From Adineta vaga (lineage: Eukaryota; Animalia; Rotifera): a DNA stretch of 64,000 bases. Position numbers and translations under genes: made by a program. The notes beneath the pieces are model-generated. The model was not told the DNA's origin, ran no database searches, and saw nothing but the letters and a program-made list of their open reading frames with translations. Below are positions 42,449 to 53,100 of this stretch, one piece after another (position 1 is the first letter of the stretch; each line of letters begins with the position of its first letter). Location of the stretch: positions 6,944,001 to 7,008,000 of the forward strand of contig CP075496.1 in NCBI GenBank assembly GCA_021613535.1, written 5' to 3'.

Positions 42449-45400
42449 ATGCCGGCTCGTTCAACTTATAATCAACCTTTATCAACGTCATCAAATCATC
42501 AAATAATTAATAATAATAATTCAAATCAAATTCCTACAACAAATTCAAATACAGATATTACATCTTATATTGGAAAAGTGTTAACTATTAATCAACATCA
42601 AATCGTTGTTGAAGATATTTTAGGACAAGGAGGTTTTGCATTTGTATTTCTTGTTCGAGCATTTAATCAACAACGTTATGCATTAAAACGAATGTATGTT
42701 AATAATGAACGGGATTTAATTGTTTGTCAACGTGAAATTGCAATATTAAAAGAATTTTCTTCACATACAAACATCGTTAAATATATTGATTCATCGATAC
42801 AATGTTTAACACCACCATCACAATTGAATACACAAAGAAAACATAGAGCGGACGATGATGATAATGAAGATAATGAAGATGATGCTATTTATGAAATACT
42901 TTTACTAACGGATTATTGTTCAAATGGATCATTAACTGTAAGTTAGAGGATACAAAAATTTGATTTATATGAGGTGTAATATAGAGTATCGAGAAAACTG
43001 GAAGTTCCAGTTTTCAGTCTAATACTAACTTTAGATTTTGTATTCTCATGGGAAACTAGTGAAAAGTGTAACTAATAATCATATGACAAGATTTAATATG
43101 CACAGAGCTTTGTAACTACATCGAAGTCTATACATATCTATATCTATATCTATATCTATATATTTATATTTATATCGGTATTGCAACTATTAATTTTTCT
43201 AGACTCGTTTGAATGAACAACGTAATAATGGTGTATTATTAAATGAACGTCAAATTCTACGTATATTTGCCGATATATGCAATGCTGTATGTTCATGTCA
43301 TCACCGTCGTCCTCAACCAATATTACATCGTGATATTAAATTAGAAAATATTCTTATCGATCCGCATCAGTCGTTTGTTCTTTGTGATTTCGGTTCAGCT
43401 ATTATGCTTCCATCTTCAACACAAAATGATCATCAACAATATCAAGCGAATCAATTGACAACGACAATAATTCAACAATTGGAAGAAGAAATTCAACGTT
43501 ATACAACATTGTCGTATCGCGCACCGGAAATGATCGATCTGTATAGTCGATTGCCAATTACATTGAAAGCCGATATATGGGCAATGGGTTGTCTTCTCTA
43601 TAAACTTATGTATAATGTAATGCCATTTGGTGATAGTATCTTAGCAATACAAAATGGAACCTTTGTTATACCTGATGATATGGCACAAACTTATAGTCGA
43701 GAATTGAATTTATTAGTTCGATATATGTTAGAAATCGATATTAATAAACGACCAGACATTTGGCAGGTATGAAAAAAATGAACTCTAACTTTGTTCGTAA
43801 TGTTGACGAACTTAGATCCATTCATTCACCATTTTTCCTTTATTTAAAATTTTGTAAGAATTGCTCTGAAATTATCTAAACAGTATCATTTCTTCGCTCA
43901 TTTCCGTCTTAAAATACTAAATAATCTATAATTATAGTTACTGAAAAACAAAAAGAACTATTATTTGTTTCTATTTAAGGTCGCTTTCATAACATATAAA
44001 CTACTTGGCACGGAATGTCCAATTCGAAATCAATATCAATCAAAAATTCCGGATCTCAGTACTATACCAATGCCATTAACCGAAAGTGAATCACGTCATC
44101 AACGTACAATGGCTTTAGCAAATACAAAACCTACGTTAACGAGCAACTCTGATGAAACATCTATACTTGGTACAGCAGTAAATCCACGTGAACGTCCTCG
44201 TGGAATGATAGCCCCATCAAGTTCTTTCATTACTTTTAATCAATCAACTCAACGACCAACAACTGCTGCTGTTGTTCCAGCACCTCCTCCTCCTCCTCCC
44301 CCACCATCTAAACCTGTACCTCCACCTCGATCATCTCATCAACGATCTGGTTCAGCAGCTCAACTGATGTTCGATGATGATTTTTCGCAATTTTCCAATC
44401 ATACTTTTAGTTTAACCAATATTCCAAATATGGCAATCACAACACCAAAAGCAACAATATCCACACCTGATCGAAATGTTTCTCGTGCACGACCATCACC
44501 ACCAGCATCTCTATCTTCTGCATCAGGTCTGGCTTTTAAACAACAATTATTTCCTCCACCTCCAGCTACTTCAGCAAGTAATACACAATTAACAGGAATA
44601 TCTGTTGTTCATCATCAACATCGACGTAGTGCTTCACAAACGATAAGTCCAATCGATAATCAATCGACTGTTCAACAGACTTCTTCTGTTGAATCTACTG
44701 CATCATTCGATCGTCGACATTCAATAGATTCTTCTGCAAAACCATCATTATCACAGTCAGAAGTTTTATTCATAAACGAAACTTCTGATGATGATGATGA
44801 TGATGAAGATGAAGAAGCATTAACAACAAATTTAAATAAACTAAAAGTTTACAATCATTCAACAGAAAATGTCAAATCACGAGAAAGTCTTATTTTAAAT
44901 GAAGATGATCGTCTTTTTGCAAAAACATATACAATTAATTCGCAATTAAAATCCGATGATGAACAAACTTCATCCTCACTATCCGATGAAGATGAAATTA
45001 CGGATAAAACTAATAGGGTATGTTACTGAAAATATCTTTTGATTTACAATTATAATCATATTTGATCTTCTTTGTAGAAAAATAAGAAAAAAGCACAAGT
45101 ATCATTAACACCATTACGTTCAAGTCATCATCCATCAACAGACGAACAAGAAAAACATATTTCATCGCCAAGTACAACTAACAAAAATATTGTCAAACGT
45201 TTAATTGAACGTTGTTCCCTTCAACAACAATCTCAACAAGATGAACCTTCCGCATCATCAACTCCATACAAACGAAAAGATTCGTTTACACTTGCTAATG
45301 AACATCCAATTTCAATGAGTGGTTATTCAGAAACTAAACCACATTCAAATGATAATAATAATGACAATGATGATGACGACGACGACGACGACGACGATGA

Positions 45401-47281: not shown

Positions 47282-47660
47282 TTTGATTTAATGCTCCTTC
47301 TTTCCGGTGACTAATCAAACCTTTCACCTTCACGTCTTTTCTTCTTCTTTTTGTGAGCGTTCTGTCATTCCATATCCTTTCTTCACTGATTATTCCATAA
47401 ATGTCATTTTCTCTCTTTTTTTCTTGTTCATGCATATAATCATGTGTATAGAAACAAATCTTATCTCTTTCTTTTTTTCACATTTTTTCTTCATTTTCTG
47501 TACTCGATTCGATGATATATCTATTTATTCTTTTATGATCTCTACATTATGAAAAAAAAAATAAAAGACAAAACAAACTAACTCAATAATGCAATAAAAT
47601 ATAAACATTTTCTTTAATGAAAGAATTATCTTTTTTTTTAACTTTAGAAAGTTTATTTCA

Positions 47661-48581
47661 ATGAGAATCTATTTGAAACCAACAGTAATACTCATTATCT
47701 GTATCATATGTCTCCTTCTCTTTGGAGTTTATACATGGACTTGGTGGCAAAGACATGTATGAGATTATCATTTTCTTCTGATCTATATGACTCGATTTGA
47801 TTTGTGATCTTTAGAAATTACCTACGGTTCGTTTTACCTATCCAACACCAAAGACAAATTTCAATGATTTAGAACAAGCACTGCTTTTGGACAATCGAGT
47901 TCTATCGAAATGTCAACATTTTGCTCAGGGCAAACAATTACTTATTGTTGATAGTAAAGGTATAAATTTCTTTCAATATTGACATAGATTCTCGACAGTG
48001 TCAGTTAGAAACGAGAAAAAAAATTACCAATGAAACTTGAACACTTAACAAATCTATTAAATATTTAACATTCACCATGGAGAAACAAAGAAACATTTTA
48101 ACTTTCAGTTTTTCTTCTTCATTTACTAAAAAGCAACAGAAGTTATTTGATTAATATATTTAGGTTATCTTTGTGAACGTCGTCATCTTGAAAAAACAGA
48201 CGGTTGTTGTCAAACATCATCATCATCGATTCTTGGTCCATACGTCTGTGATAATTGTACATTAACAACTCATTGTTGTAATTCATTTGAACATTGTATA
48301 TCTTGTTGTCTCAAACCTGATCATGTATGATGACTTTTATTTCATTCAATCAAAGCTAATGTTTTTCTTTCTTCTTCTTTTCGTATATTTTTCAGCGTAT
48401 ATATCTTCAACATTACATTCATTCTCGTGATTTAAAAACCAAATTACTTCTTTCACATTTATCAACACCATTTGATGTATGTTTATCACGATGTCGTACG
48501 CATGGTCACAGTGTTAGACATGAGAATGAATATATTGATATAACATATAAATATTGTTTTACATCCAATATAAATTCATAA
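47661..48581 (+). CDS. SPRING1: SREBP-regulating gene protein (SPRING1/C12orf49 family)
   Basis: N-terminal signal-anchor followed by the Cys-rich domain CQHFAQGKQLLIVDSKGYLCER..GCC..CDNC..CCNSFEHCISCCLKP..FDVCLSRCRT..SVRHENEY..KYCF, over four exons. Confidence 0.92.
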
Positions 48582-48602
48582 TAATAGTAATAATAATAAA
48601 TA

Positions 48603-51600
48603 ATGATTGATTCGGAAAATACCAATGAGAAAGAAAAGGAAATAGAAAGAAATCCAAAATATCTATCTTTTCACGTACCATGGCTCGATTCAAGTCATCA
48701 ACAAACATGTTTGCCGGATAGTCCATGGCAAAAGGTAAAAGTGTTAGAAGTAATTTCTGCTTTTTTTCAATTGGAAATCATTTTTTTCATAGATTCTTGA
48801 TGATCTTGAACCAACATTAGCAAATCGAGTACGACAACAATTCAATAATCCACAACGTCGACAAATGCTAATTGAATTACTTGGTACACAATTTCAAGGG
48901 AAATTCTTCAAAACTGAACCAGATAATCCTTCTATATTAGTTCGTTAATTTAAATCATGTATATCGATGAAATTCTTTTCTAAAATTTCTAGAATTCACC
49001 AAATATGACCGAAGAAGAACGACGTAAACTTGAAAATGAAGCAAAATCATGGTTGCAAATACAAACTCTTAAAGTCGCAACAGAAATTGGTGCAGGTTCG
49101 ATCTCATTTTATACTTCATCTGATGAAATATCTTTCATAATTCTTTATTTTTATAGCAATGAAAGAAAACGATCAGTAAGTATGAAAGAAATAGAAATAA
49201 AATAATCGATTGTAATATAATAGAATGGGTCACGTATCTGATGATATGACGAAATTTCTTGAATATACAAATCAAATCGTATGGAAAGCACTTGAACGTT
49301 ATTTATATCAATATCAACAGAAAGAACTTCAAAAACAAGAAGAACAAAAAGTACAAGAAATGAATAAATATAAACATCAAAATGCATTAGCTGGTGGTTC
49401 AAAACTTCGATCTATTCTACGAGATTCACGAATGCATTCAAGAAAATTACCAATCATTCGTGGTTTGTCATTTTCTATTCGACTAAACAATAACTATTCT
49501 AAATTTGATTTATTTAGAATCATCAACGTCTCATCCAATGACATCACAATATAGTGATTTAATATCCAATTCAATAATAACATTACTTAAACAAGACTTA
49601 CGTCGTATAACATTTATTAAAGAGAAATTATTTGGTCAACAATTACCTATGGCACTTCGACAAATTAGTTGGACAGAATGTTTATTTCGATTCGAAAAGA
49701 AACCATTTGAATCTGATTTGGTTTGTTTGTTTTCTATGATTATCATTGAATTAATTGATTGTTTGTAGAATTTTGTTGAATTGAAAACCAGACGTGACTT
49801 TGCCAGTGGAATAACACGTGGAAAAAATGAACTTAAACTATCAAATCCATTGAATACACCCATAAAAAATCTGATCGAAAATGATGTTATTGAAGTAAGA
49901 TTATGTCTTCTCTATATACTTTTAATAATCATCAGTTTTCATCATTCGATTTCGTAATCTACTTGATGATATGATCTCTTTCTTCTTTGTTTAGACATAC
50001 AGCAAAACTCGTGCACTTCAATCATATCTTGAAGAATATCATTTACGATTTACTATAAAAATTCTAAATGTTCTTTATACTTATAAGAAATCTTATGAAC
50101 CATATTTCATACATTGGTTATTACCATTTCAATTGACTTATTTCGATGAAGCAAACAAAGGTATTTTGATGTATATTCATAACTTTTCAAAACGAAATTC
50201 AATGATTCGTTTAGATGAAGAAATTTATGTTATTGCTATGCATCTTGATTTATTTATTCGTCATTGTTTTCCAAAATGGTCAAATGTTTTTACAATTGCT
50301 AATAAAATTATTAGTACTATGTCAATTAATGATTCAGAATTCTATTATCATTTAAAAAAAATCTCAAAAATCAATGCAAAAGTCAATCCAAAGGTACTAT
50401 GATTGATTTCTATTCAATTTATTTTGAAAAATTCATATTTATCTAGGATTTTCCGATGGAAATTCTTTCGTTAGATGAAAAGCAAACGAGTAAGAAAAAC
50501 ATTTATGAACATGAGTTAATAACTGATCCAGTTATCTTTCTTCGAAAATGGATTTGTGAAGTAAATATTGAAACTAGATTATTCGAAGTAATTTTTCATA
50601 ACAATTTAGATGTTTGTTGGAATCCTTCATTCTAATAGTGTTCTCTATTTATGGGATCAATTTTTCATGATTAAATGGGAAATGATTTATATTGAATATG
50701 CATGTCGAGCAATAATATATCTATTACGTGATAATTTTATGTGTGCTGAGAATTATGAAGAAATGCGAAAGATTTTTCTCGATGAACCTTTTCAATTGTA
50801 TACATCGGATATTCAGACAGCTTTTGTTCATTTGGCTTTGAAACAAGATGATCCAAAATACATTCCAGCAATGAATCAACGTGCACGATCAATGAAACTT
50901 TTAAATAATATTCCGATCCTATCGAATAAACAAAAACTTTATCTAGAATCAATTGGTATTAAGGATATTTCATTGAATTTAATCACACTTGTGGTATGTT
51001 ATTTAGTTATGTTGAGCGATGATTGATAAGATTTTAATTAGACGAAAGATCCTCGAAAAGATCTTCAATATAAATCGATCATTGTTGAGATCGAAGCACA
51101 TGGTGGTGGAGAAAAACTTGGACATATTTCAACCAAATCGATTCCAATAATTCGTACGTAAACATGATTTTTGTATTTTCATTCATTTCAATATATTAAT
51201 TTCAGAAAAACGAGAACAATTGAAACCTGGTTGGGACAAACTCATAATTGAAATTTCGAATGAAAGATTGATTCTCTCAGTTAAACAAGCACGTCAATCA
51301 TCAATACCTATACGAATTCAAGCACTTATTACTATTCATCAACACATAGATGGTACACAAGATTTCTTTTTTTTTTTTTAAATAATCATTCACTTTCCTT
51401 TTCTTCATTAGTTAATACAGAACAAATTCTCGGTCATTGTCGTTTTCCATTATATATTCCACAAAAAATTGGTAATCTGGATACATGGGATGTTACATTT
51501 GGACCCGTACAACGTGCTTTACATTCTGGTCAATCTCCATCATCAATCGACATGATATCAGACATACCCAAAACATTCGTTTCCGGTATGTAAACGACCT

Positions 51601-52168
51601 TCGAAATAGTTTCAATTGCCTAGTTCTATCTGATAAATAGAAATGAAAAAATATAAGAGAATTCATATATGAAACTATGCTTTATTCTTGAATAGATCCT
51701 GAGTTGACAGAACAACAATAATATCAACAATAAAAACTGGCATAAAGACAAAAGATTTCTGATTGAATGTTTTGCTTTCTCACTAATCTAGATCTTTGTT
51801 AGTTTTGTTGATTTATACTTTACTAACAATTCTATGGATGTTTTATATGACTCTTTTCTATTTTGCTTGGTAGCTCTAATGAATCAATCTATTTAAAAAA
51901 GAAAACATATGCTCTACAAAAAGAATTCTTTTCCGTTCAATTAGTCTTATCTATAAAAGGGAAATAAAGTCTTCTGTATTTCATCACGCGCATAAAATAA
52001 TCTTTCCTCAATTTGATTTATGAGCTTTCAAATCAAATCATTATTGAGTATAAGAATATTTGATGTAAAAACATAACAGTTGTAGATTATTTTTCATTTA
52101 TAGATAAAATCGGTCCTGGTTCAACAATTTCACTTGTTATTTTCGATCCAAAATCTGAACAATATTAA
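48603..52168 (+). CDS. TBC (Rab-GAP-like) domain protein with probable C-terminal C2-like region
   Basis: Multi-exon ORF including a 19-nt microexon (49157-49175) needed for frame. LPMALRQISW, LIENDVIE and KWICEMFVGILHSNSVLYLWDQFF resemble TBC motifs; the beta-rich C-terminus contains ILGHCRFPLY. Confidence 0.7.
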
Positions 52169-52413: not shown

Positions 52414-53100
52414 ATGTCAAATATATCTTTACTTAAATTTTTGATTTTAATTCGACTTTTATTTTGGTATTTCACTTTATTAGTATGTGCATCAACACGT
52501 ACACTTTTTATTGTTCAAACATGGTCAAAATTGTTAACTTTTGTCATCATATTAAATCTAAGTGTTTCATTGATAAATCTTTTTGTGGAAAAGTCTCGTA
52601 AATATAATGAAAAATTCGAATATTTTCTAGTCATTTTCTTATCTTTACTAATCATTCTTACATTTATTGTTTACATATCTTATCTACATAATATTTATTA
52701 CTATATTATGAATCTATTAACTTTGAATATAATGCAAAATGATCGAAATCAAAGTTTATTATCGATTTCTTTGAACTATTATCAATGTTGTCGTATGCAA
52801 GAAGAAATTCTTTTCGATTCAGTGAATGAACGCGAATATTTTCTTGCCTTTTCTTATTGTGAGAAAACGATTGAAGAGAATGAAATGAAAAAAGATCAGT
52901 GGGATCATATCACAACATGTGGAACTATTTTTCGATCGATCATATTTTACACTCGATTGTTTTTTATATTTGATTTCTTATTCAATCTTTTTATTGTGTT
53001 TCAATATTTCAAACATATATGGACGAATATGAATGAATCTATTGAGAATAATCAACATGAGATGATAATCAATGAGAATTTTAATAATAAATTGAAATAG
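52414..53100 (+). CDS. Divergent tetraspanin-like four-TM protein (intronless)
   Basis: 228-aa ORF with three N-terminal hydrophobic segments, a large loop with YYQCCR..C..C, and a fourth TM, matching tetraspanin topology. Confidence 0.65.
   Translation: MSNISLLKFLILIRLLFWYFTLLVCASTRTLFIVQTWSKLLTFVIILNLSVSLINLFVEKSRKYNEKFEYFLVIFLSLLIILTFIVYISYLHNIYYYIMNLLTLNIMQNDRNQSLLSISLNYYQCCRMQEEILFDSVNEREYFLAFSYCEKTIEENEMKKDQWDHITTCGTIFRSIIFYTRLFFIFDFLFNLFIVFQYFKHIWTNMNESIENNQHEMIINENFNNKLK

Follow-up and report, generated by a model that had tools for sequence, protein, structure and literature searches.

Translational reinitiation after a long open reading frame (ORF) is documented almost only in viruses and retrotransposons, where it works with stop and restart codons lying within about 20-30 nt of each other, tolerates overlaps such as UAAUG and AUGA, and even allows the start codon to precede the stop codon (PMC10275272). 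Here we examine a junction between two nuclear genes of Adineta vaga, a bdelloid rotifer, that has a comparable geometry. It lies in a stretch of 64,000 nt, C4:6944001-7008000 of the 100.8-Mb genome of 6 contigs, which we refer to as the window, and it places the stop codon of SPRING1 next to the start codon of a second gene that we call TBC-like. The closest described counterparts of this spacing are calicivirus VP1/VP2, influenza B M1/BM2, hypovirus ORF A/B, and SART1, in which stop and start likewise stand within about 25 nt, share nucleotides, or have the start upstream; the two frames usually differ in these cases (PMC10275272, PMC3035654).

A second group of related systems is formed by the operons of the tunicates Ciona and Oikopleura and the SL1-type operons of C. 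elegans. As at the junction described here, unrelated co-oriented genes follow each other with almost no intercistronic region, a single spliced leader (SL) is used, and the linkage is conserved (PMC7986045). Such operons add the leader to each downstream gene and keep the 3′ untranslated region of the upstream gene. Operons and polycistronic mRNAs were stated in 2021 to be unreported in rotifers (PMC7986045), and our literature search returned no report, and none later than that one, tying bicistronic or dicistronic mRNAs or operons to bdelloids. A further likeness comes from green algae, for which PMC7896298 describes at least two conserved proteins on one capped, polyadenylated nuclear transcript.

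Based on RNA contigs, gene models, and a comparison of 11 bdelloid lineages, we propose that a single conserved, SL-capped unit holds SPRING1 and the TBC-like gene as its two cistrons, with reinitiation as the favored route to the second protein. We put this reading forward tentatively, at not quite an even chance.

RNA continuity across the junction

The A. vaga RNA data are assembled contigs from four runs of two studies. In two runs of one study, a 2,438-nt contig leads from SPRING1 exon 1 through the unbroken segment 48396-48732 into the exons of the TBC-like gene, with the introns removed. In two runs of the second study, contigs bridge 48426-48627 and 48426 onward. Introns are without contig cover. 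In runs in which SPRING1 and the TBC-like gene fall on different contigs, the two genes have equal depth (10.2 versus 10.2-11.8; 9.5 versus 9.2). Contigs P0001, P0002, and P0019 were too short or unrelated to the junction.

Intron-free contigs were also found for two other species, one with an ATGA overlap at the junction (L031/L045/L046) and one with a 26-nt spacer (L047/L048). L031 comes from a metagenome collection, and L045/L046 and L047/L048 are Logan contigs of four runs. On each of L031, L045/L046, and L047/L048, SPRING1 is followed by the TBC-like ORF, 741 or 720 aa in length, and then by the beginning of a third ORF. The bicistronic mRNA offered as one option by the original prediction, which had been made from the letters of the window alone, is thus supported as a continuous spliced RNA by assembled contigs of three species.

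The third ORF in the L045 and L047 contigs is homologous to a third co-oriented gene of the window (228 aa; 52414..53100, plus strand); that of L045 matches 52450-52866 with an E value of 2e-25. The spacer that separates it from the TBC-like gene measures 246 nt in A. vaga but about 40 nt in R. sordida, 31 nt in L045, and 2 nt in L047 (coordinates elsewhere: L045 2853-3311; L047 from about 2775; L052 10856-11542). No Pfam family matched the third gene of the window. In other species this gene belongs to the unit, which may be tricistronic because the third gene shares RNA contigs in two of them.

Gene models on both sides of the junction

SPRING1 extends over 47661..48581 of the plus strand, with exons at 47661-47756, 47815-47959, 48164-48324, and 48396-48581 (stop codon included), and RNA contigs show each of the three introns as a GT..AG joint. 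Searches of the window used single exons, and spliced queries came from the RNA-derived loci L031 and L048. Profile PF10218 matches exon 3 with 46.2 bits and exon 4 with 43.9 bits (cut-off, 22), and the full orthologue in L048 scores 114.8 bits. With the domain covered and the scores above the curated cut-off, the name that the original prediction gave to this gene holds. Since the match reaches profile position 131 of 131 six residues ahead of the stop codon, this stop is genuine. SPRING1 is single-copy in the A. vaga genome.

The TBC-like gene, deposited as I4U23_019221, extends over 48603..52168 of the plus strand according to RNA joints, the deposited protein, and the C termini of orthologues. 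Its RNA-confirmed exons are 48603-48734, 48793-48939, 48993-49095, 49157-49175, 49224-49462, 49518-49720, 49769-49894, and 49995-50160, with the next exon starting at 50215. Later exons were read from the sequence (50610-50993 by eye), and the last one, at about 52103-52168, was placed by orthologues, the C termini of which map to 52094-52165. GT..AG joints in contigs of all four runs confirm the donor proposed at about 48734 and the in-frame next exon at 48793. The deposited protein maps from the ATG at 48603, and this junction ATG is the sole in-frame start before a conserved PF.IQWLDSS motif in all but one lineage. Exon 48603-48734 is coding: both the ohnologue and 10 other lineages conserve it, and it contains the sole in-frame ATG upstream of that motif.

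Against the RabGAP-TBC profile (PF00566), the A. vaga protein reaches 17.2 bits, below the cut-off of 25.2, over the last 65 profile positions only. A Pfam search of the single exons of the gene gave no TBC match. One frog homologue scores 25.7 bits, just above the cut-off, and animal homologues are annotated "uncharacterized." What is left of the earlier assignment is a weak resemblance, and on these scores "TBC-like" is best taken to denote likeness, not membership in the RabGAP-TBC family.

Several details of these two genes were observed in passing. The 19-nt micro-exon 49157-49175 of the TBC-like gene has RNA joints on both sides in all four runs. A minor contig of run X1 joins 49460 to 49517 with one extra C, beside the normal 49462/49518 joint; this may reflect an alternative acceptor or donor, or an assembly error. 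The deposited SPRING1 model I4U23_019220 (135 aa) stops after exon 3, which RNA joins to exon 4, and deposited I4U23_019221 ends in a mini-exon near 51697-51723, upstream of the orthologue C termini. Both deposited A. vaga models thus look wrong, SPRING1 in its missing last exon and the TBC-like gene in a doubtful one.

The tight junction is conserved among bdelloids

An exon-1 alignment scan of metagenome contigs gave 23 loci, and protein look-ups added the genomes of Rotaria sordida, R. magnacalcarata, and A. steineri as well as Logan contigs; a word search with the exon-1 ORF gave no candidates. In 11 lineages, the gene immediately upstream of the TBC-like one is SPRING1. Their distances from stop to ATG are 21 (A. 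vaga), 20, -1 (TAATG), -47, -4 (ATGA), 12, -8 (ATGatTGA), 25, 26, 15 (R. sordida), and 12 nt, the last in a relative with 54% GC. AT-richness is not the cause of the tight junction, because this GC-rich relative keeps a 12-nt spacing. The two ORFs overlap in four lineages (L025, L029/30, L031/45, and L035).

Both ORFs are under purifying selection, as their dN/dS ratios (nonsynonymous to synonymous divergence) show: SPRING1 has 0.19-0.31 and the TBC-like gene 0.16-0.36, with dS values from 0.45 to above 1.3. The original prediction had named an outcome that would count against it, namely a TBC-like transcript that starts downstream of a noncoding exon 48603-48734, together with a spacer unconserved in length and frame. 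The exon proved to be coding, and the spacer does vary in length and frame, within the limits of -47 to +26 nt.

Two observations concern the loci L029 and L030. L030 (1861-2030) lacks 45 nt of the last SPRING1 exon relative to L029 (1426-1600), between two copies of "cgaacacata." In both, the downstream ORF has its sole in-frame ATG inside SPRING1, some 40 nt or more ahead of the stop codon.

The run of seven stop codons

The junction reads AAT TCA TAA(48579) TAA TAG(48585-87) TAA TAA TAA TAA(48597-99) ATA ATG(48603-05) ATT GAT. The seven consecutive in-frame stops that had first drawn attention to it (TAA TAA TAG TAA TAA TAA TAA, 48579..48599, plus strand) match the sequence exactly, and the ATG at 48603 is in the SPRING1 frame, as had been claimed, 21 nt past the first stop codon. 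If the run served as a read-through or frame insulator between two independent genes, seven in-frame stops between two ORFs in one frame would be just what is expected. Shared frame is expected in 1 of 3 cases by chance, however, and is found in just 2 of the 10 other lineages; none of these 10 has a seven-stop run, their spacers differ, and they carry a single stop, other frames, or overlapping ORFs.

The pattern is also common. (TAR)7 has 973 matches in the 100.8-Mb genome, the reversed register has 2,812, and a second seven-stop run in the window, at 44786, is an out-of-frame (GAT)n coding repeat. The genome-wide counts and this second run rule out the stop run as a rare signal, and the reading of the run as a (TAA)n microsatellite, also considered in the original prediction, is correct. 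Part of the run even aligns with coding sequence of the ohnologue, in which its 3′ half matches the first codons (ATG GCA AAT AAG versus ATA ATA AAT AAT G). We consider an insulating function most improbable. From these comparisons the run is best understood as SPRING1's own stop codon followed by lineage-specific, TAA-rich filler, with no role of its own.

A fusion of the two proteins, by splicing or by read-through, was considered and rejected: no such RNA joint was seen, and the frames differ between lineages.

An AATAAA at 48595..48600 (plus strand), 2 nt 5′ of the downstream ATG, had been taken as the nearest polyadenylation signal of SPRING1. It is present in the window but is not conserved at the junction in other lineages; no canonical AATAAA was seen in the printed junction sequences of L025, L035, L037, L045, and L047.

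A spliced leader on the first cistron in one species

The rotifer spliced leader has been described (PMC3795323). In one of the two other species, L048 starts with CTTACCAAGAG, the last 11 nt of this leader, joined directly to the SPRING1 ATG. The A. vaga genome has 42 SL gene copies, against 0 matches for a reversed control; these are followed by a GT donor (GTAAATA at each copy examined, 3 loci), and the 11-mer of the SL end is confined to SL genes within the A. vaga DNA fetched. At 9 of 9 genomic loci, which comprise 7 distinct sequences, SPRING1 has an acceptor motif 0-22 nt ahead of its ATG, consisting of a pyrimidine tract plus AACTTTAG or of TTTAAG abutting the ATG. In the window this likely spliced-leader acceptor is at 47630..47647 of the plus strand. 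As a side observation, the SL genes occur in inverted pairs about 155 nt apart (C1:2551160-2551336, C5:9884356-9925969, and others) and are clustered, especially on C5.

These findings raise the possibility that the locus is an SL operon without an intercistronic region, in which the dicistronic RNA is a precursor or serves as an mRNA for SPRING1 only, and the TBC-like mRNA arises by internal trans-splicing. The leader would be attached where SPRING1 ends, at an AG close to this end or within it (TAG 48587 in the window), and nested mRNAs would each be translated for their first cistron. The SL genes with their donors, the leader on cistron 1 in L048, and the co-orientation of two genes on one RNA (by contigs, not single molecules) all agree with this. 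An AG is present 5-22 nt upstream of the ATG in the window, L037, L045, L047, and L056, and a block, TAGTAATAAT, is common to the junction and the sequence upstream of the ohnologue. No leader or poly(A) overhangs were found at the junction in the contigs of the four runs, a negative that would count against an operon, although contigs would lose a short internal leader branch.

By contrast with the SPRING1 acceptor, the sequence ahead of the TBC-like ATG has no conserved pyrimidine-tract/AG motif, and in 5 of 10 lineages the nearest 60 nt or so contain no AG at all; TAG 48587, proposed earlier as a trans-splice acceptor, is not conserved among the 10 lineages compared. An acceptor farther upstream would place two upstream AUGs in the leader. 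Where the ORFs overlap, in four lineages, one precursor cannot give both complete mRNAs. For the same reason, and because AATAAA is not conserved, an upstream 3′ end ahead of the downstream acceptor, as in SL operons, was not found. The published statement on rotifers cited above also speaks against an operon. We regard internal trans-splicing as rather unlikely.

A paralogue with its own promoter

An ohnologous region on C1 is collinear with the locus but lacks SPRING1. It contains a paralogue of the TBC-like gene (L002, C1:6035644-6039152). In every species in which this SPRING1-less paralogue was seen (loci L002, L022-L028, L036, L049-L051, and L053), a palindrome resembling an X-box (RFX-type), e.g. 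GTTACCATAGCAAC or GTTGCCATAGCAAC, precedes the ATG by 45-141 nt. No X-box was found in SPRING1 or within 2.5 kb upstream of it, the window has no strict match anywhere, and the SPRING1-linked copy showed no X-box or other conserved noncoding element. The X-box suggests that the paralogue is a cilium-related gene, the two copies of which would have diverged in regulation. Most likely, the genome duplication was followed by reciprocal loss, in which SPRING1 disappeared beside the copy that retained its promoter, while the second copy was deprived of its spacer and became reliant on transcription from SPRING1.

An internal promoter would offer a different explanation. Two overlapping transcripts would be made, the TBC-like one from a start site inside the last 50-80 nt of SPRING1, e.g. 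about 30 nt downstream of TATAAATA, which stems from the YKY codons, and run-on transcripts of SPRING1 would have been merged with it by assembly. k-mer assemblies do merge transcripts that overlap by at least 30 nt, and the paralogue shows that a short proximal promoter can drive the gene. In most lineages TATAAATA is found 31-57 nt upstream of the ATG, and a stretch of at least 45 nt leading up to the start codon is free of upstream AUGs. Conserved codons, however, dictate the motif. Judged by the distance from TATA to ATG, transcription in L025 would start only past the ATG, and the in-frame ATGs of L029 are all upstream of the motif. Neither the equal contig depth on both sides of the junction nor the lack of an X-box or other conserved noncoding element is expected under an internal promoter, which also leaves unexplained that, over dS above 1, stop and start have not moved more than 26 nt apart. 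We therefore judge an internal promoter to be quite unlikely.

The gene upstream of SPRING1

Upstream of SPRING1 lies another co-oriented gene, the Rotaria and A. steineri orthologues of which carry a Pkinase domain. In the four runs, its RNA contigs stop at 47540, 47560, or 47592, which defines a 3′ end zone at 47540..47592 (plus strand). Contigs of this gene are 3-5 times deeper than those of SPRING1 and the TBC-like gene, and contigs break in the gap of about 100 nt upstream of SPRING1.

Proposed reinitiation at the junction

We tentatively favor the following route to the TBC-like protein. Transcription would begin upstream of SPRING1, and the leader would be trans-spliced onto the conserved acceptor just 5′ of the SPRING1 ATG. 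The introns of both genes would all be spliced out, and the RNA would continue via the 21-nt spacer into the TBC-like ORF, which would have no promoter of its own, no space for a leader, and no conserved splice acceptor. Ribosomes ending at the SPRING1 stop would then resume at the adjacent AUG by termination-coupled reinitiation. The dicistronic RNA would, in this scheme, itself be the mature template for the second protein.

Reinitiation would explain why stop and start are kept within -47 to +26 nt and sometimes share nucleotides. We favor it because it is the only model that requires the observed spacing, because this spacing, with stop and restart within about 30 nt or overlapping in 11 lineages, fits the published rules for long ORFs, and because the TBC-like junction lacks the features of the locus's own SL-type junction.

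Several points weigh against this reading. Once a ribosome has translated some 190 codons, it normally does not reinitiate efficiently unless a dedicated element assists, and the core UGGGA of the canonical TURBS (termination upstream ribosome-binding site) was looked for at the junction and is absent. Synonymous conservation near the 3′ end of SPRING1 is only slightly raised, 0.85 versus 0.73-0.78. Rotifers have SL trans-splicing, by which other SL-bearing animals resolve tight clusters, and five lineages, the A. vaga window included, have an AG within 25 nt of the TBC-like ATG. The RNA evidence is all from contigs, in which single molecules spanning both ORFs are not demonstrable and the junction is not quantifiable.

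A candidate for a dedicated element has similar weaknesses. In the 18S rRNA of L055, gene positions 1059-1074 form a hairpin with an AU-only apical loop, AUUUAUAU, which we take, by comparison with the mammalian sequence, to be helix 26; mammals have UCCCA at the corresponding loop. Helix 26 is the target of viral TURBS motif 1 (PMC3035654). Because the rotifer loop is AU-only, TURBS-like pairing in rotifers would need to be AU-rich. In 7 of 10 lineages, a sequence of 8-10 nt complementary to the A. vaga loop precedes the ATG by 32-59 nt, in the window as CATATAAATA at 48544..48553 (plus strand), and is AU-only; we regard it as a lead only. The empirical probability that a 60-nt window holds a loop complement of at least 8 nt by chance is about 0.03; the complement coincides with the YKY codons, which explain it, and it is absent in L045, in the GC-rich lineage L056, and at the second junction.

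Taken together, the most complete form of our proposal is an SL-capped polycistronic mRNA, comprising the pair and in some species the trio, with reinitiation at a junction kept within about 25 nt or overlapping over dS above 1, to which pairing with the 18S helix-26 loop may contribute. For this fuller version we would put the chance below even.

Comparison with known systems

A conserved cellular junction in which stop and start are 0-26 nt apart provides a natural test case, with the X-box-promoter paralogue as a built-in control. It could reveal by what means a downstream gene that lacks a promoter is expressed, be it by eukaryotic ribosomes or by the trans-splicing machinery, and how the regulation of gene pairs diverges after genome duplication. 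As the faulty deposited models illustrate, such junctions can stay hidden in automated gene sets.

In tunicate and SL1-type operons, each downstream gene receives a leader; unlike in these, the coding regions of SPRING1 and the TBC-like gene abut or overlap, no downstream acceptor is conserved, and no leader was seen on the downstream gene. In green-algal polycistronic mRNAs, upstream ORFs are reportedly short and bypassed by leaky scanning, which would be unworkable past SPRING1 because its ORF has about 190 codons with internal AUGs. The viral and transposon cases have a defined TURBS with a UGGGA core, whereas here intron-containing nuclear genes are involved, and UGGGA is absent, with only a weak, AU-rich complement to the rRNA loop. 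The seven stop codons are ordinary, and the junction at which they stand is a conserved dicistronic arrangement of an unusual kind.

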